From assembly GCA_965153285.1 (NCBI GenBank), contig OZ229112.1: a stretch of DNA of 64,000 bases; one strand, 5' to 3'. The notes beneath the pieces are model-generated. The model worked only from the letters and a program-made list of their open reading frames with translations, had not been told where the DNA came from and ran no database searches. The DNA is from Podarcis tiliguerta. Taxonomy: Eukaryota. Below, piece after piece: positions 7,859 through 38,603 of this stretch (positions are counted from its first letter, which is position 1; each line of letters opens with the position of its first letter). The position numbers were made by a program, and so were the translations under genes.

Positions 7859-9380
7859 GAAGCATTACAATTTCAGGTACAGATATATTTTTGTACATTT
7901 TAATGATCCATGTCTAACACCACAAGAGAGAAGATTTAACACCAAACATCACCCCCTCCATTGTTCGCCCTAGAGTTTAAAAATACCCAATTCAGCTGCT
8001 TTCTTTCTATCCAAGGCTTTTTACCTGAATCTGCATTTTCAGTATTATTGAAGGGAACTTCAGTCTAGCAGACCTCAAGTCAACTTGAGGCACTCTTTCA
8101 AGAACAAAAACCATTTGAAAAATTGGTCCTCAAAATCTAAAGCACCCTAAACTGTTAGGTGCTACTTATAAGCAAAATTGGTAATTTTGGTAGAAAACAA
8201 ATCTACTTAAAAATAAAAAGGTGTTCAACCGCTTGATATCCAACCAAGCAGATTTAGTAGCCTAGAAACACTAAAAAAGTGTTTCATTTATAAATACAGA
8301 AGGAACAAAATATTGTCATATTCAGAGAATCAAAAACATAGCAAAGATGAGTGTCAAATTTGTAACAGACTTCCTGGTCTCAACAGCTGAAATCCCACAG
8401 TATTTCCAAGGTTACTTGAATATACTGTCTCAGAAGCTTGAAGTTTATATTCATGAAGTGGTATTTCCATGCCTAAATTGTTATTAAAAGTTGTGCATAA
8501 AGTGTTGTACTTGACTGTCTAGGCTCCTCATATTTTGCCTCCTGCAGCCAAATCACTCAGTGCCTTCCACATCTTGTAAAAAGGAACCACACGTTAATTA
8601 AGAAACACAGATGAAGTCACAATATTATTAAGTTCAGCTTAAATATCACATGCACAATGCTGTCACAGGACGTCAGTCACAGTGTGGAAGGATTTGTGGT
8701 GTTTGAATATGCAACAATAGAGCCACCTTATTTCACAGTAAATGGTAACGAACCATTTTGTGCAGTAGTTTGAATCACATTCCATTAGATGTCCCTGCCA
8801 AGTTACCAGTAAGTACCAAGCTCCAAACCAATTAGATTCCTCAACGCTGCAACTATTTGAAGCTTGTCAAATGCCTAGAGTCAGCTTAGTCTATATTGTC
8901 ACAATTGTGTAAGTACCCTTACACGGATGTTCAACAATTTTCACCAGTTGCTATGTGTTGCCTTTGAACAAAAGACCAACACAGAACAGAAATGGTCTTG
9001 GCCGAAACTGAAAAAAGTTGATCAAAATAAAATGACCAATGAGCAATTAAGTTTCCAGAAGTAAAAAGCTAGTGCGTTAAACCCCAGTATATTGTTTCAA
9101 CTGGTTGTGAAAATATACACAGACCTAGTGATAATTTTTTATACTAGCCTCAAATTTTAAAAAGTGAAGTAGTCCACCATGTGTAAGTAGTCTTGTTCTA
9201 CCAGTCTCAGTATTTCAAAACTGCAAAAAGTTTGAATCTGCCATCAAAGAGTTATAAAATAAATGTCAATTAGAAATTGCTCAAATTCAAGATTATTTTT
9301 AAAATTTTAAGTTACAGCATACATATGAAAAAAGTTAGGCAACAACTAATTGTTTCAGATAAGTAGGTCCATGGGAAATC

Positions 9381-9752
9381 CTAATGAGGACGAAATCCTT
9401 GTCTGTGGGGAATTTTTGGTGATACGTTGAGAAAAACTATACTGCATGTAATCCTATTGGAATTTTTACAAATGCTGTAGAGTCTCGTACAGTAACATTT
9501 TTCTACATGCATTTCAATTTCACAGCAAAAGTGAAATAGAATACCTAAACACAGTAGAGAGTATTCATGCAATATATCTAATTTTTTGATATAATAATGC
9601 ATACAATTGAAAATTATACTATGATTACATTTAGGGCTTTCTGCAACTACGAGGTGGATATGAAAAATATGGCCCCTTGTATCATTAACTAGAAAGCAAC
9701 CACCACCTCCTCTATTGGGTATCTTTTTGCGCTTTTTCTTCATTTCTCTTAA
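9381..9752 (-). other. AMD1: AMD1 readthrough tail: 123 in-frame codons after the UGA, ending KIPHRQGFRPH-TAG (ribosome-stalling element)
   Basis: Frame continues TGA TTA AGA GAA ATG AAG... with no stop until TAG at 9381-9383, in AT-rich 3'UTR. Matches the described vertebrate AMD1 tail. Confidence 0.9.
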
Positions 9753-9887
9753 TCAACTCTGCTGTTTATTCTTGGCAAAACTGGTAAACACGAAGTTGTA
9801 GTCATTAAACTGAGCAATCTGGCGATCTAGGCGCTTAAAACCTTCAATCTTCTGGGCTGAAGAAAACACTGTGCGACATTTTGAACT
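9753..9887 (-). CDS. AMD1: AMD1 exon 9 coding part, [21 protein letters not shown]...FAKNKQQS-stop
   Basis: ctattag| acceptor, TGA at 9753-9755. Spliced CDS is 1023 nt (340 aa). Confidence 0.97.
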
Positions 9888-10000
9888 CTAATAGAAAAAG
9901 AAAAAGATATTCTTCAGATACACGAATCTTGATGGTAGAATATTCAATACTAACAAATTAAGAGGGGTAACCACGTTTGTATGTTGTAACCAAGAGCCTT

Positions 10001-10355
10001 AGGTAAAGGTAAAGGGACCACTGACCATTAGGTCCAGTCGTGACAGACTCTGGGGTTGCAGCGCTCATCTCACTTTATTGGCCAAGGGAGCCGACTTACA
10101 GCTTCAGGGTCATGTGGCCAGCATGACTAAGCCGCTTCTGGCGAACCAGAGGAGCGCACGGAAACGCCATTTACCTTTCCGCTGGAGCGGTACCTATTTA
10201 TCTACTTGCACTTTGAGGTGCTTTCAAACTGCTAGGTTCGCAGGAGCTGGGACCGAGCAACAGGAGCTCACCCTGTCATTGGGATTCGAACCGCCGACCT
10301 TCTGATTGGCAAGTCCTAGGCTCTGTGGTTTAACCCACAGCGCCACCTGCGTCCC
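10001..10355 (-). mobile_element. Sauria SINE in AMD1 intron 8
   Basis: Same family. 12-bp TSD ACCAAGAGCCTT (9989-10000 and 10359-10370). Confidence 0.92.
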
Positions 10356-11493: not shown

Positions 11494-12181
11494 CTTTAGA
11501 TCACAATACACTGTTCAGTCTATAGTTCTTTTTCACAGGAGGACACTGAAACAGTCAAGGCCTTCCTCTTCTGCAATCAAGTGGTGGCCCCATAAAAATC
11601 TACAGTTCTCTCTGCAAAAGCATGAATGTTTACTACTTATAAGTTCAGTTTGAATTTGGAAAACATGCTTTGGATTATAGCCTTCAAATCAGTTAGGGTC
11701 CTCTAACATTTGGTGTGGTTTAAAGTAGCTCCTTGTCCTGTTTTCTCTTGACCAGCAACATTACAAAACCATATTTTGTCTCCTTTTTGCAACCGGAATA
11801 CACCTGTTATTCATTTCTTTCTTTCTTTTTAAATCAGTGTATTTGTGTTTTCTGAAGAAACGAAACAAAGATGCAAAAACTATGGCCATTGGGGGACGGG
11901 AACACTGAATGGCAATGGTAGTGGAAACAGTAAAGTTGATTGTGTGGAAGTAGCCTTTTATGTGCCATTCATGGCATTTCCAATTTATTATGATTTATGC
12001 AATAATAAAAATAAAATGCTGTAAGATGCCACAAAACTGGTTTTGCTGTAATAGACTGACTAGGTAAACATTTTCTGGATTACAAATACAATTACTTCTG
12101 TAATGCTTGTGGATAGCTGGATCATTTGGGATTATCTGGCTGCCAAAACTAGCCTACTGAAAGTAATACAAATGTTTGTAC

Positions 12182-12337
12182 CTGATTAACAAAGAGGGTT
12201 GTCACAAATTTTCCTGGCTTAAAAATGTCTATGACCTTCCTAATTAAGTCATCATAGGATGTCTGACTTATGTTGGTTTCAAAACTAACGTATGAGAACT
12301 CTGGTTCTGGAGTGATGTGAATAGTCCAATAAGTTCC
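12182..12337 (-). CDS. AMD1: AMD1 exon 8, [22 protein letters not shown]...TTLFVNQ
   Basis: cttttag| and |gtacaa, 156 nt. TIHITPE motif. Confidence 0.97.
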
Positions 12338-12433
12338 CTAAAAGAAAATAAAGGAACCAAGTTAGAAATCTCAACATGGCATCAGTTTATAAGTGAATTC
12401 TCATTGCAAAGAATAAAAAAATATGGCACTCAC

Positions 12434-12526
12434 ATCTGTTTTCATCCCATTCATTGAATATCCACAAGGATTGAACATTGTAGCATCAATGACAGAACCT
12501 GTTATCAGGTCACGAATTCCACTCAC
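12434..12526 (-). CDS. AMD1: AMD1 exon 7, [31 protein letters not shown]
   Basis: gctttag| and |gtgagt, 93 nt. FNPCGYSMN motif. Confidence 0.97.
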
Positions 12527-13224
12527 CTAAAGCCAAGAAAGTGTTTGTTTATTTAAGCTATTTATGTAGCTGACATTTATAAGCAGTGTACATAAAAATT
12601 AAAAAGATAAATTAAAACTAGTCATATAAACAGAAAGTCTTCTTAAAATGTGTGCTCATATTTAATCTTCGGTGTAGACTACTGCTTCAACCGATTAATG
12701 TATGTCTGATGAATCAGTTCTTTTCACCCATGGTGCCTCTCTTCCTCTCTCAAATAAGTTCAAGGCTTTAGATGTCTGGCTGTTAATTTACCTTATTAGT
12801 TTTAACTGGAGAAGCCAGTTAAGTAGCTGAGAATACTATTCCAGGTGCATGCATTTCACCATGTGTGTTTTAAGTTGTTCAAATGGTGTCTTCATTGAGA
12901 TATGGAGGAGAGATGTAGTGAATGTTCTATTGCTGACTAGGCAACCCTAAAACAAGTCAATGTTTCTTATAGTGACTACGATAACTTGTGCTTAAATTTA
13001 GTTAAAACTAAAAGCTTGCCTAGCATGTTTTAATTGTGGGAAAACTTTTCTACTCCCTGCATTTAATTAAAACCTTTTGAGTATTCCTATTTTACAGACA
13101 AATTAGCTGGCAATCAGGAAAGGATTTGCCTAACGACTTTACAAGTGAGGGGCTGGTGAGGACAGTCCTACATATTAGGAACTGTATTAGTCTCTGTTCT
13201 TCACAGTAGACAATTCACACTTAC

Positions 13225-13369
13225 ACGAGTGACATCATTTGCGGTAACACCATCTTTCATGTAGAACTGGTCCATAACTACTGGATCGAGCTCGCTCATC
13301 AGAATTTCCAGTGTTTGATCTGGCTGATTGATGACCCGACTCTCTGGAAAATCCAGAGTGTACAAGTAC
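13225..13369 (-). CDS. AMD1: AMD1 exon 6, [28 protein letters not shown]...DVTR
   Basis: taaacag| and |gtaagt, 145 nt. Contains DQTLE putrescine-site residues. Confidence 0.97.
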
Positions 13370-13471
13370 CTGTTTACAGGGGGCAGAGAATCAGAGAAGA
13401 TAATATATAGCACATAAAAGTCAAATTTGTACTGCTGAAGATTATAAAGTAATAATTCAAAGTAAACCTAC

Positions 13472-13514: not shown

Positions 13515-14481
13515 CTGTAAAAAGCAAACAAGACCAGGAATAGAGCTTAGAAACAAGGACTATCATCTTTGTTTTGAAACGTAATGTTTAGTACAGCTAA
13601 AAATTAATTCCATTGTCTAATTAGTGTCTCCATAACATCATGAGAGTAATTCACGCCATACATCAGTTTGTAGCAGTGATGTGGGGGTAGAAAACTAGTA
13701 CTGCAAACTGATTCCCCAACCCCTGTAAATATTTCCATTTTGTAAGTTCATTATTATCAACAACAAAAAGGATGCCTATTCCAGTATTAGGCAAGATTGA
13801 GTTTCAATGTTTTTATTTCATTTATTAAAATAAACATGCTAAATTAGATCACTCTGTGGCATCAGAAAATTTTCCAATGTATGCATGAAACCCCACATCA
13901 CTGGCTTGCAGCAAAAAAAATTTAAAAAAAATAGTATATTACTAGTTGGCACTGGAGATTTGTCGCTGTGCTTTTCTTACAGAGCTCCTAAGCTCTGACT
14001 ACTTATTATTGGCATTGGTTGTCCATGTGATTGCAAAAGAGACACAGCCATGTCTCACTGCCAAGCAATCTACTAGATTTGCTAGAACTACATAGCTCTT
14101 TGTCCATGCAACTGTTTTCTTTTTACCCTTTTCTGAACTTACGGTCAACAGAAGACAAGGGGGTATTATCACCCAAGGATACACATAAAAATATCGGACA
14201 TCCATCAAACTGTGTGCACTGTATAAACCTATTACATTTATCATACCATAATTCTGACTAGGTGTGAAAGTCTACATAAGAGTAGATAATGTAAGAGTCA
14301 GTTCTTGACATCTTTTGGTCAACTCAGACTATCACTTCTAATCAAGGCAAAGCTGCATTTTTAGCATGATAATGCTTTTATATTGGTTTACATGCTAGTT
14401 TCAACAACCCACTGCGCATAAGGCTCTTGGACAGTTGTTTATTATTTACAAGCATCCCATTAAAAATACACATTCACTTAC

Positions 14482-14584
14482 TTGGAAATATTTCATTAAG
14501 GAACTCTACTTCTTCCTGGAAATTCCTATGTGGGTACTCTTGATGGGAAGGCTTCATGAAATTCTTGCGTGAATAAAAGAAGCT
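14482..14584 (-). CDS. AMD1: AMD1 exon 4, [34 protein letters not shown]
   Basis: tctttag| and |gtaagt, 103 nt. Confidence 0.97.
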
Positions 14585-16214
14585 CTAAAGAATAAGAGGG
14601 GTGAAATTAAATATGCAGATTTTCTTAAAAGTTCCATTAGGATCAAAAGGAAATTATTTAAACACATGCTTCTGCTCAAGGCCTTTCCTTCTTGTCTACA
14701 ATTTAATCTATTGTCAACTCAAAGATGAATGCACTACTTTGCAAAAACAAAACATGACATCAGTTTTGTCACATATAATACATAAGAATGATCTGGAAAG
14801 ATTTTAAGTGGTGTCTTTAAAATACAGATTGGCAACTGCATATAGATAATGCAGGGGTTGGGGGTCACCAGAAGAATTGGTAACACTTTTGTTACACCAA
14901 GCTATTCCCTTCACTGAGTCAAATAAAGGAGAGTCCAATGATAAGGGCCATGACCTTGATTGTCAATATTGGGTATTAATTTCAGTAGCCCACCAATGCG
15001 TTTCAAAATTTTACCTGTTTAGCTACCAACATTTGGTTTTGCTGCTTTGATACATCATCAATCTACTTTACTATTATGCAGCTTGGAAATCCTAGGCTTA
15101 TACAAATGTCTGCCCCAAACAAGATACAATGAATTGATTTCATGGCCAAGAACACTATCTTAATATGTATTGCTTCCTCTCAATGTGGATTAGTGCTATT
15201 CAGAGATCCCATAAGCACATATAAATTGAAATAGCTTTAGTATGTTACAGTGCACTTTGATGTGTACATTAACAAAGTGATTATTTTGGAAAGCACTACC
15301 AAGATGCTTGCCAATTTCCAAGGTGCAGTGAGAGAAAATGACCATCAGGATGTCAAGAGGAGTGTTTCTAGAGCCTCTCCCTAGAGTGCTCTTTACATGC
15401 TGTGACTACAATTCAAGGCCCAGTGTCAGGCAAGGATAGGGTAAGGATAAGGAAACATATTACATGCTGTATTCATTACGGTGGCTTGGCCACACAACAA
15501 GGCCATATTGTGCCACACACTATTCTTGTAAATACAGAAAAATACTTTCATGAGTGCATTATTTCCAACTGCTTAAATAGTCTTTAAAAGAGGCCATGCA
15601 GACAATAGTGCTCAGGAACCTTAGTAGAACTTGTAGATTAAGATCACACAGAAGTAAAGTTAACTTTTGAAGCAAGGGACTGGGTAGAATATATCTGTTG
15701 TACAGTTGTGAACTGTGCATGTTCCAGCAAGCCATGTTTAACTGAAGGGTGCACTACAGGGCGTCCATATGGTATACTGATGGATAAGAACATCATGCAC
15801 TATCTTTGACCAAACCAGAACAACTTTTTGTCATGCATTTGACCAGAAGGTGAATTTGACCTGGCTCTCCCACAGCTTTTTCTGCTTGTACATAAAAACA
15901 CAGGCAATGTTACTTTATGGAACATGCATGTGTAAAGGCAATATGGGTTGCCATCCTGCTGGTATTGGTTTGTGAGAGATGTTGTATTCATTCCAAAAAA
16001 CACATTAACATGAAGAATATTCTTGTGCAGGATCCAGGAATCAATGTATTTCTATAAGATGTCTGCTGAAGCTTTAAACATAGAAACAACGCTGAAACAA
16101 GGTCTAGCACTCTACACTTCTCTTCCTTAAATATGTAAACCACCACCACACTTAAGAAATTAATATACCTTTCAATGCAGCTATAACGTAAGGATGAGAT
16201 TCTGGGTATCTTAC

Positions 16215-16341
16215 CTGAATCGAGTCAAACCCACAGTACTCTCTAGCAAGCTCTAACAGGGGAACCAGTGCCTGCAGTAAGAGGGTGGTACCACATGTCT
16301 TCAAAATGAAACGTCTCTTGGAGACAAACATGCTACTCTCA
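16215..16341 (-). CDS. AMD1: AMD1 exon 3, [22 protein letters not shown]...FDSIQ (E75/S76 autocleavage site, catalytic Cys)
   Basis: ttttcag| and |gtaaga, 127 nt. SE^SS pyruvoyl-forming site and KTCGTT motif. Confidence 0.98.
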
Positions 16342-18080
16342 CTGAAAAACAAAATACAATTGGTAGTGTTACATTTAATGCCTGGGTAGCTTTGGGAAAC
16401 TCAATTTATTTGTCAGCTGATTTGGTTCACTCAAAGCTGTTCTTAGGAAACATCCCTGGGAATGTTCCCTAAAGATTGGATGGGGGTGTATCATTCCACA
16501 ATGGGCTTTGGATCAGGCAGAAGCCTACAGCTCTCCTGCAGTACTTTTGCCTGCATCAACATTGTGACCTGACAAATTGCTCCCCTCACTGTTGGGAGAG
16601 AAGGTAGCTTCTAACAGTAAAGGCCTATGTCCTCAATATGCAGATTTGTGGTTGTCTTAAATACAGGGAAGGAATACAATGACAGCATTATATACCATCT
16701 TAAACACAGCTACTAATGGCTGATGAATTAGGCATATAGAATATTAGACAGTAACACTAATTTTCTCCTGAACAGCAACCACAAAACTTTCTATGGGTCT
16801 ATCTATGGGTTCATACCATGTGAAGAGACATTATCACATCTCTCACAAATGACAGCAAACGCTTTTTGCCGAGAGCAGGGAGACAGAGCCAACTGATCAG
16901 GGCTGCACTGCTGGGGGAAGGACGACTTTTCCCTACCCAGTACCATTTCCCAATTTAAGATCATCCCTTCCACAACTGCAACTGGCCCCACAGGGTGAAA
17001 AAAAAAGTGCATATATGTTTTCCACCATCAGACAGATATTAGTTTCAAAGGAAAAGGATTTAATTCTGAAATACTGAATTTGAAGCATGTTGAAAAGGAT
17101 TACCACCCACTGTAGTACTGCCATTATGATCTGACTTTCCTCTGCATTTTCCTCTTAGAAAGAACACCACAGACAATCCACTCACAATCTTCCAACATCT
17201 CATCTAGTTTGCCATCCCTTACAATGAAATGAATAATTAAGACTTCTGTATTGGTGAAAACCAGCATGGTAAAGAGGCTTCAGTGTTGGGACCAGATCCA
17301 AATCTCAACTTGACTACAAAGCTAATGATCAGACTTTGGTCAAGTCAGTATTCTTGACTTAACCTCCACCACAAGACTGCACTTAGCCTTAGAATGTTCG
17401 GGTGAACTTCTCATACAGTGTAAGTATAGCATGAAAATGTAACAAAAAGGGAGTTGGATAGGCTCCTTTTCTCCAAAGCTATACACTCCAACAAAACTCA
17501 TAATGGGGCTGTTTTGGGGTGCCCCTCCCCTGAGTATCCAAGCAACTCTACCCTATCTGTAGCCAAGAGGTGGCAATAAAAGACTATCACAATATTTATA
17601 CCATAGTACATATGCAGCCCAAAACACAGCATAATTTTATCAGAATCATCAACCTGTTCCAATTGGGGACCATTTGGGTAGCTGCAGAGTTGAGTTGGTG
17701 CTTGTTTTTTCAAGCAAGCATTTAGATTTGGAACTGATGGCAGAGGGTTGCCTACGTGTGTACAGGGATGTCTATGATCAGCAGAGCAGAGTATACTATA
17801 AAGGGTTTTTTTTAATTAAAAAAAGCTGTGGTGATCAGAACTGCATAAAACACTATAAGTGGGTACACAGACTGGGAATAGTAAGTATATTTCTCAACAC
17901 TGACTTTTTCCTCATTTACAACCACAGCACACAAATTCATGTTTTCATTGAGTTTTCTACTGGACCACCAAGATCTTACCTGACTACTAAAGCCAACAGA
18001 CCTATCAAGCAAATACATAACTTTGAACCTTAGTGATAAGATTGTTTCTAAAAAGCTATGTTTAACCTTTGTGAGCTTAC

Positions 18081-18167
18081 CTGAGTACATAAGCTTCCTG
18101 CTTGTCAGTTTTTGTCACACTTATGATCAAACAATGCACATTCTCCAAAAGTTTGTCCCACTCAAAC
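18081..18167 (-). CDS. AMD1: AMD1 exon 2, [28 protein letters not shown](S)
   Basis: ctaacag| and |gtaagc, 87 nt. Confidence 0.97.
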
Positions 18168-18629
18168 CTGTTAGGGAGAATAAAGTTTAAAATTTTAATT
18201 CAAGCAGAAATCCAATACGACTACAACATTACTATTTCAAGTCATAAACGGGTAGTAGAAACAAGCCCATAGCTGTAGTGCCCAATGCCTTATTTTCCTT
18301 CCTTAGTGATTTGTAGATTCTGTTTAACTACATGAGTAGTAACATAATGACCAGCCTCAGCATGGCTTAGATGTAAGCCACAGATGTAAGAGTAATAGTA
18401 GATTGCAATTCAACATGTTGCAAAACATTTTTTCTTTTGTGAAACATTTTTGTGTGTTAATTTTAGTATTTGGGCACTGGTATCTGAGTATTACCACTTA
18501 CAAGCCATCACATGCCTTTAGAATTAGAATATAGGAATGCTGCAAAAGCAGAATAAAGCCTGAAGTTTCAGCATAGGAGCCTGTTTCTGGCCTGGCTATG
18601 GCCTCACACACTGCAGTGTGACACTATAT

Positions 18630-25032: not shown

Positions 25033-25166
25033 CTGGGGATGGTGCGGAGATCGCCGGACCCATTGGTTTGGTGCGGCTCCTGCGGCGAGGGCTGTTGCCA
25101 GGCGAACCACACCTCCAGTAGCTTCTCAGTCCCTTCGAAGAAGTGTGCACCGTTCTCCTCCATCAT
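25033..25166 (-). CDS. AMD1: AMD1 exon 1, [21 protein letters not shown]...GSGDLRTIP(R)
   Basis: Hallmark [14 protein letters not shown] motif. AG|gttagt donor, 134 nt. Confidence 0.97.
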
Positions 25167-25577: not shown

Positions 25578-25598
25578 CTAGCTAATGTCGCCGGCCAT
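25578..25598 (-). promoter_or_regulatory. Polyamine-responsive uORF MAGDIS
   Basis: ATG GCC GGC GAC ATT AGC TAG, the same peptide as the mammalian AMD1 uORF. It is the only ATG in the leader. Confidence 0.97.
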
Positions 25599-28929: not shown

Positions 28930-29220
28930 GGGACGTGGGTGGTGCTGTGGGTTAAACCACAGAGCCTAGGACTTGCCGATCAGAAGGTCGGCGGTTCAAA
29001 TCCCCCCGACAGGGTGAACTCCCATTGCTCGGTCCCTGCTCCTGCCCACCTAGCAGTTCAAAAGCACGTCAAAGTGCAAGTAGATAAATAGGCACCGCTC
29101 CGGCGGGAAGGTAAACAGCGTTTCCGTGTGCTGCTCTGGTTTGCCAGAAGTGGCTTAGTCATGCTGGCCACATGACCCGGAAGCTGTAAGTCGGCTCCCT
29201 TGGCCAATAAAGTGAGATGA
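28930..29220 (+). mobile_element. Sauria SINE, 3'-truncated
   Basis: Reverse-complement match to the other copies. Lacks the ACCTTT tail. Confidence 0.88.
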
Positions 29221-38237: not shown

Positions 38238-38603
38238 AAAAGGTAAAGGACCCCTGACAGTTAAGTCCAGTCGCCAACGACTCTAGGGTTGCAGCACTTA
38301 TCTCGCTTTAGTGGCTGAGGGAGCCGATGTTTGTCTGCAGACAGTTTTTCCAGGTCATGTGGCCAGCATGACTAAGCCGCTTCTGGCGAAACCAGAGCAG
38401 TGCACGGAAATGCTGTTTACATTCACCTTCCTGCTGGACTGGTACCTATTTATCTACTTGCATTTTGATGTGCTTTTGAACTGCTAGGTTGGCAGGAGCT
38501 GAGACCAAGCAACGGGAGCTCACCCCGTTGCGGGGATTCGAACCGCCAACCTTCCGATTGGCAAGCCCTAGGCTCAATGGTTTAGACAACAGCGCCACCT
38601 GCG
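38238..38603 (-). mobile_element. Sauria SINE in CDK19 intron 1
   Basis: Same family. Inserted at the end of a short palindromic repeat. Confidence 0.9.

Follow-up and report, generated by a model that had tools for sequence, protein, structure and literature searches.

A candidate AMD1 C-tail readthrough-and-arrest element behind the AMD1 stop codon of Podarcis tiliguerta

AMD1 controls polyamine synthesis, and Yordanova et al. in 2018 (Nature 553:356) reportedly described an AMD1 tail that is reached by readthrough and ends in a ribosome stall, and proposed a ribosome-queue model for it. Whether the AMD1 gene of Podarcis tiliguerta carries the same arrangement, and what its tail would do, is the question raised by a reading frame that stays open behind the AMD1 stop codon in a 64,000-nucleotide stretch of this genome (GCA_965153285.1, contig OZ229112.1), here called the window. 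We conclude that the open frame is very probably the orthologue of the vertebrate AMD1 C-tail readthrough-and-arrest element, apparently intact at the sequence level, with a stall predicted to operate as in human. What we establish directly for this locus is the gene identity, the frame and its improbable openness, the homology, the conservation of the key residues and where the stop falls.

The AMD1 gene and the open frame behind its UGA

To place the frame within its gene, AMD1 exons were matched one by one, as stop-free minus-strand pieces, against the Pfam SAM_decarbox family (PF01536). Seven pieces were colinear over PF01536 positions 33-342: 18080-18199 (profile positions 33-61), 16155-16400 (61-108), 14477-14584 (106-139), 13204-13467 (154-212), 12404-12526 (215-244), 12152-12337 (246-301) and 9756-9887 (311-342). 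Six of the seven scored above the Pfam cut-off, and the last piece reached 15.6 bits, under the cut-off of 22.2. This last AMD1 coding exon (9756..9887, minus strand), identified by its translation and its profile positions, is preceded on the minus strand by an AG acceptor at 9888-9889 and a polypyrimidine tract. Exon 1, with the start of the main ORF, lies near 25166 on the minus strand.

The 5′ leader of AMD1 contains the six-codon MAGDIS uORF with its TAG (25578..25598, minus strand), some 410 bases ahead of the main ATG; Law et al. in 2001 reportedly described it as an arrest peptide of the AMD1 mRNA. Introns, ordered SAM_decarbox exons and the MAGDIS uORF together identify the locus as an intron-containing AMD1 gene. 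A processed pseudogene or retrocopy was rejected, since introns are present and the exons are in order. The MAGDIS uORF is named as the second known nascent-peptide control element of the AMD1 mRNA in PMC13025110, and both known elements of this kind appear to be present in the window.

Two further features of the locus were recorded. An interspersed repeat of about 290-370 bases, probably SINE-like, occupies 10005-10355 in the intron ahead of the last AMD1 exon, with further copies at 28930-29220 (inverted, 91%) and 38239-38603 (81%). Upstream of AMD1, the GC-rich segment 31800-33260 (minus strand) holds several long stop-free runs of up to 155 codons; a CpG island is one possibility, the first exon of a neighbouring gene another.

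Read on the minus strand, the end of the AMD1 coding region continues as CAG AGT TGA TTA AGA GAA ATG AAG AAA AAG CGC AAA AAG, in which the TGA at 9753-9755 is the primary AMD1 stop. This UGA (9753..9755, context AGU UGA UUA AGA) is the candidate readthrough codon, and six gene calls from other species read it as W. Behind it, 123 sense codons follow in the AMD1 frame (9384..9752, minus strand) up to a TAG at 9381..9383. A sequence-only reading of the window had claimed exactly this arrangement, 123 in-frame codons from the AMD1 UGA (AGT TGA TTA) to TAG 9381-9383, and the minus-strand reading and its translation bear it out. The features it had listed for the encoded peptide could likewise be recovered, namely a basic KKKRKK run (after L-R-E-M), 10 Cys and the end VSPKIPHRQGFRPH; the peptide also has 10 His. 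We refer to the 123 codons as the tail, an assignment that draws on the frame, on shuffled sequences and on homologues.

Openness of this length is improbable for the composition of the DNA. The tail is UTR-like (GC 0.33, GC3 0.28), in line with the one-third GC that had been assumed for it, and its 369 bases contain no stop in the AMD1 frame, compared with 9 and 11 in the two alternative frames of the same strand and 7, 8 and 6 in the frames of the opposite strand. A single-base estimate put the chance of an open tail frame at 5.7e-5, and 14 of 200,000 dinucleotide-preserving shuffles of the tail were open (7e-5); the earlier rough figure of 1e-4 was thus close. Among GC-matched 369-base windows elsewhere in the 64 kb, 0 of 25,806 on the minus strand and 45 of 26,406 on the plus strand were open. 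A chance ORF was rejected on the count of 0 stops against 9 and 11 and on the 14 open shuffles in 200,000, and a gene on the opposite strand was rejected on its 6-8 stops per frame. GC-richer parts of the 64 kb also contain stop-free runs as long as the tail. The improbable part is a long run in AT-rich DNA that is in phase and begins exactly at the AMD1 stop.

We also considered the RNA around the stop. With a U after it, the UGA is not in a classic leaky context, and RNA folding past the UGA was no better than that of shuffled sequences (z-score 0.15). Rfam gave no family match within the window. Neither AATAAA nor ATTAAA was found inside the tail, so that no consensus poly(A) hexamer there would cut the mRNA ahead of the tail stop, and the next poly(A) signals past the tail are at 7904 and 7858. 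An AATAAA hexamer does occur at 9765-9770 (minus strand), as codons AAT AAA among the last AMD1 codons and 10 bases ahead of the UGA; its use in polyadenylation would strip the mRNA of the tail. Public sequencing runs containing the stretch numbered 20, from 8 studies, with none on record as RNA. Fourteen of the 20 are only guessed to be RNA and contain 0.88-0.89 of the sampled words, a share that fits a spliced transcript with the tail and does not amount to evidence of expression.

Homologous tails and their conserved blocks

Homologues were sought with the ATG-started tail ORF (9384-9743, 120 aa) as the query. A word-indexed search of ORF clusters from public assemblies yielded 34 homologous clusters with E values from 1.6e-62 to 3.8e-11, and a profile built from the alignment of those clusters retrieved 32 representatives at 50% identity, 27 of them not seen before. 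In all, at least 60 related ORF clusters were found in public assemblies. In six gene calls (P0006, P0021, P0032, P0042, P0043 and P0048), the AMD1 C-terminus is joined in frame to the tail: the gene call decodes TGA as Trp and continues straight into it.

Scans of genome contigs and of viral contigs for the tail gave no matches, and a metagenome scan gave one locus (L001) with a mammalian-type tail, which may be human and was excluded from all comparisons. Five more diverged related ORFs (P0027, P0029, P0035, P0051 and P0055) are frameshifted or truncated; they look like decayed retrocopies of tail-bearing AMD1 mRNA, or assembly errors.

The stop lies directly behind the end motif in all 44 motif-bearing tails, and in eight of these the gene caller had read the TAG as Gln. 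At the protein level the tails differ in length by whole codons only, a count to be read with the fact that homologous ORFs are ascertained as open, which biases any tally of frame preservation and leaves lineages with a lost frame invisible. Fish-like tails cannot be aligned over their first half and range from 111 to 137 residues, yet they reach the end motif in frame. Conservation peaks at the tail's end, where the sequence-only reading had proposed looking for it: the commonest residue was common to 0.97 of sequences at the final 10 positions and to 0.93 at the final 17, with 0.76 for the part of the tail ahead of these 17. The conservation table of the 44 motif-bearing tails is anchored on a pattern within the motif, which forces H, Q and G at their positions.

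Three blocks are kept throughout the tails: a start block, M-K-K-(K/R)-R-K-K, a central block, and an end block, F-L-Q-V-S-(P/S)-(K/L)-I-P-H-R-Q-G-F-R-(P/A)-H. In the window the start block reads M-K-K-K-R-K-K and corresponds to tail codons 4-10, an A-rich segment at 9723..9743 (minus strand) that was delimited from two tail alignments. Its Met is invariant in the second of these alignments. The six gene calls with a start upstream of the ATG contain the block too, so its conservation is not merely an effect of ORF calling. The central block, LDILHEYSLLCLGILFHFCCEIEMHVEK, is hydrophobic and rich in Cys and His (9498..9581, minus strand; delimited by alignment conservation). Its commonest residue is common to 0.85-0.88 of sequences, it is kept in the fish-like tails, and in these alignments it is conserved nearly as well as the arrest motif. 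The Kyte-Doolittle hydrophobicity of the tail peaks here at 2.6, and the block belongs to a tail with three hydrophobic stretches in all (ORF residues 25-35, 60-76 and 97-109), of which the central one is strongly conserved.

The tail had no family match in Pfam and no usable match in ESM Atlas, where its recognition of 1068, against the 2300 reached by most known families, is of the size that shuffled or reversed sequences typically give. AlphaFold2 run on the tail alignment gave low confidence, with a mean pLDDT of 45 and a pTM of 0.31.

The terminal motif and the solved human structure

The arrest motif, FLNVSPKIPHRQGFRPH, consists of the last 17 codons of the tail (9384..9434, minus strand) and was delimited with PDB entry 9q7q and the conservation table. 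A PDB sequence search with the tail ORF returned one match, 9q7q, 'AMD1 C-tail', with an E value of 1.4e-5 over the last 22 residues; of 20 known residues in the alignment, 16 are identical, including all of the last 11. Counted from the end, K113, R117, F120 and R121 of the 123-residue tail equal human K117, R121, F124 and R125 of 127. On the minus strand, the clamp residues are encoded at 9414-9416 (Lys, position −11), 9402-9404 (Arg, −7) and 9393-9395 (Phe, −4), and the Arg hook at 9390-9392 (−3). The last tail codon is CAT (His, 9384-9386), which agrees with the P-site tRNA(His) modelled in 9q7q, and the TAG at 9381-9383 directly behind it is the expected stall site.

In the human complex, Lys117, Arg121 and Phe124 clamp the rRNA base A3908 and compact the chain (Maldosevic et al., PMC13025110, Sci Adv 2026), and Arg125 enters the peptidyl-transferase centre and holds Gln185 of the eRF1 GGQ loop off the ester bond, with eRF1 and ABCE1 trapped on the stalled ribosome (PMC13025110). 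Alanine changes in clamp or hook lead to release of the chain, the stall is independent of the identity of the stop codon that follows, and footprint peaks on the AMD1 tail are seen in most vertebrates with data (PMC13025110).

The human AMD1 C-tail (PMC13025110; 9q7q) likewise lies directly after the AMD1 UGA, in frame and in the same length class (127 codons against 123 here), has the same three conserved blocks and ends in a His codon with the stop directly after it; clamp and Arg hook are among the identical last 11 residues. Relative to the modelled part of 9q7q, the window's tail differs in Ile/Val order, in Asn for Gln at −15 and in Pro for Ser at −12. The Asn at −15 (codon AAC, 9426-9428, minus strand) is unique among the 44 tails, of which 42 have Gln and one Lys; AAC is two base changes from CAA or CAG, and the position is within the part modelled in 9q7q. 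At the clamp, Lys is replaced by Leu in 11 fish-like tails (P0032-P0034, P0040-P0043, P0046-P0048 and P0058) and by Arg or Gln in two others. In these sequences the clamp Lys is not universal, though PMC13025110 terms the contact residues highly conserved.

The SAM_decarbox exons, the MAGDIS uORF, the tail homologues and the 9q7q match all support the identity that the sequence-only reading had proposed, the published vertebrate AMD1 tail. Its further statement that the whole system is intact can be upheld at the sequence level, where all residues shown to be stall-relevant are present at the correct distance from the stop.

Proposed working of the tail and rival explanations

Readthrough, the stall with its mechanism, and the degron are known from publications on the human sequence, and their operation in this animal would be by analogy. 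By that analogy, a minority of ribosomes (about 2% in human cells) would decode the AMD1 UGA as sense and go on to translate the next 123 codons. Once K-I-P-H-R-Q-G-F-R-P-H occupies the exit tunnel, its Lys, Arg and Phe would clamp an rRNA base and the chain would compact, and the penultimate-but-one Arg would insert into the peptidyl-transferase centre and keep the GGQ loop of eRF1 from the ester bond. Because the loop could not reach that bond, the ribosome would stay at the TAG, held there with peptidyl-tRNA(His) and with eRF1 and ABCE1 bound. Any product that is released would be marked for proteasomal degradation by the tail's hydrophobic stretches, and the net outcome would be an extended AMD1 protein that does not accumulate.

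In human cells the stall peak depends on readthrough and rises with G418 (PMC7089771). The queue fares less well, and the sequence-only reading, which had cited ribosome queuing as limiting protein output, is contested on this point by three sources: a queue was not seen, even with G418 (PMC7089771); the key reporter result of 2018 was traced to the IRES vector by the original authors themselves (PMC8831848); and Kesner et al. found reporter loss to be mostly proteasomal, via BAG6, with the last 21 codons dispensable (bioRxiv 2022.07.20.500724). That reading had also called both mechanism and function open. The first half has been overtaken, since the stall has been solved by cryo-EM (PMC13025110, 2026), and the second half stands: the purpose of the AMD1 stall is still debated, and the queue model is without footprint support.

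The rival explanation that survives best holds that the tail is mainly a degron, with readthrough AMD1 taken by BAG6 via the hydrophobic stretches and passed to the proteasome, the stall being minor and forming no queue. For the human tail, MG132 reduced a 19.4-fold reporter loss to 1.9-fold, placing P2A ahead of the tail rescued the reporter and deleting the last 21 codons did not, and a CRISPR screen returned BAG6, TRC35, RNF126 and proteasome genes and not RQC factors (bioRxiv 2022.07.20.500724). The failure to see a queue even with G418 (PMC7089771) points the same way, as do the three hydrophobic stretches that the window's tail keeps and the strong conservation of the central one. A plain degron, however, would not need the invariant H-R-Q-G-F-R end with its direct stop in 44 of 44 tails, and the stall has been reconstituted and structurally solved (PMC13025110, 9q7q), with the footprint peaks of most vertebrates alongside. 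We regard a mainly degradative tail as possible and lean against it. It is compatible with the preferred reading of the element as the AMD1 C-tail orthologue as far as identity goes and differs on which step is physiologically important.

The arrest mechanism alone does not account for how strongly the start and central blocks are conserved, and the central block, given its distance from the end, lies outside the exit tunnel when the ribosome stalls. It is conceivable, if somewhat speculative, that the tail is more than a spacer with an arrest peptide of roughly 20 codons, and that the two blocks, which persist as far as the fish-like tails with freely diverging sequence between them, are separate working modules, the start block acting as an RNA-level signal for entry or readthrough and the central block acting at the peptide level in docking, as a degron or as a sensor of stall timing, with the Gln-to-Asn change at −15 and the Lys-to-Leu change in the fish-like clamp tuning stall strength between lineages. 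The ATG and Lys/Arg run of the start block could be an RNA-level signal beside the leaky stop, or a reinitiation start.

Two further rivals were weighed. On one, conservation of the AMD1 3′ UTR at the nucleotide level, at protein or microRNA sites, leaves the frame open as a mere by-product, and the tail is not usefully translated here; the UTR-like composition (GC 0.33, GC3 0.28), the ESM Atlas recognition of 1068 and the mean pLDDT of 45 would suit it. Published footprints and their G418 dependence in human cells argue against it (PMC7089771, PMC13025110). So do the 9 and 11 stops in the other frames of the same bases, and so do three fish-like gene calls that run in frame from the AMD1 stop to the same end motif despite an unalignable first half; we consider such a by-product very improbable.

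On the other, the 120-codon ORF is translated by itself from the ATG at 9741-9743, through reinitiation once AMD1 translation has terminated or from 3′ UTR fragments, and not by readthrough. That ATG is three codons past the UGA with a purine at −3, and its Met is the invariant one that also appears in the six upstream-starting gene calls. Eukaryotic ribosomes reinitiate very inefficiently behind an ORF this long (more than 300 codons), which counts against such a start, and a separate ORF would not need the tail to be kept in the AMD1 frame. With the human stall peak rising as G418 induces readthrough (PMC7089771), an independent ORF is hardly credible.

Read as the AMD1 C-tail orthologue, the element can be set beside several known systems. 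The MAGDIS uORF, in the same window, likewise encodes a peptide that stalls the ribosome translating it at the uORF's stop codon; it differs in being six codons long, in the 5′ leader, polyamine-dependent and a block to scanning ribosomes, whereas the AMD1 tail is reached by readthrough in the 3′ UTR. XBP1u and hCMV gp48 uORF2 are without sequence similarity to the AMD1 tail and, according to PMC13025110, share with it the use of C-terminal nascent residues to remodel the peptidyl-transferase centre. The same source has XBP1u stalling elongation and hCMV using a helix and two terminal prolines, in contrast to the AMD1 tail, in which a clamp works together with an Arg hook and both eRF1 and ABCE1 are trapped (PMC13025110). 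Generic 3′ UTR readthrough products cleared by BAG6 (bioRxiv 2022.07.20.500724; PMC10364623) are, like the tail, AT-rich, UTR-like and hydrophobic, and the human AMD1 tail is itself a BAG6 client (bioRxiv 2022.07.20.500724). Generic extensions show no conservation of frame, length or sequence, whereas the AMD1 tail is conserved across distant vertebrate-type sequences.

The element is already known. As the sequence-only reading had said, it is published for vertebrates, and its recognition here is a correct rediscovery of the vertebrate AMD1 C-tail that is new in nothing of its kind; the literature, its discoverers included, describes the tail as universally conserved in vertebrates. It is one of few animal cases in which readthrough leads into programmed ribosome arrest, on an mRNA that also has the MAGDIS uORF, and standard annotation leaves it unmarked. 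Of possible specialist interest may be the Asn at −15, the clamp Leu of the fish-like tails and the conservation of the start and central blocks. With its Asn at −15 and its 123 codons, the window's tail is a natural variant to set against the solved human structure, and the collected tails separate fixed parts (start, centre and end) from free ones, which aids the design of experiments on the purpose of the stall.
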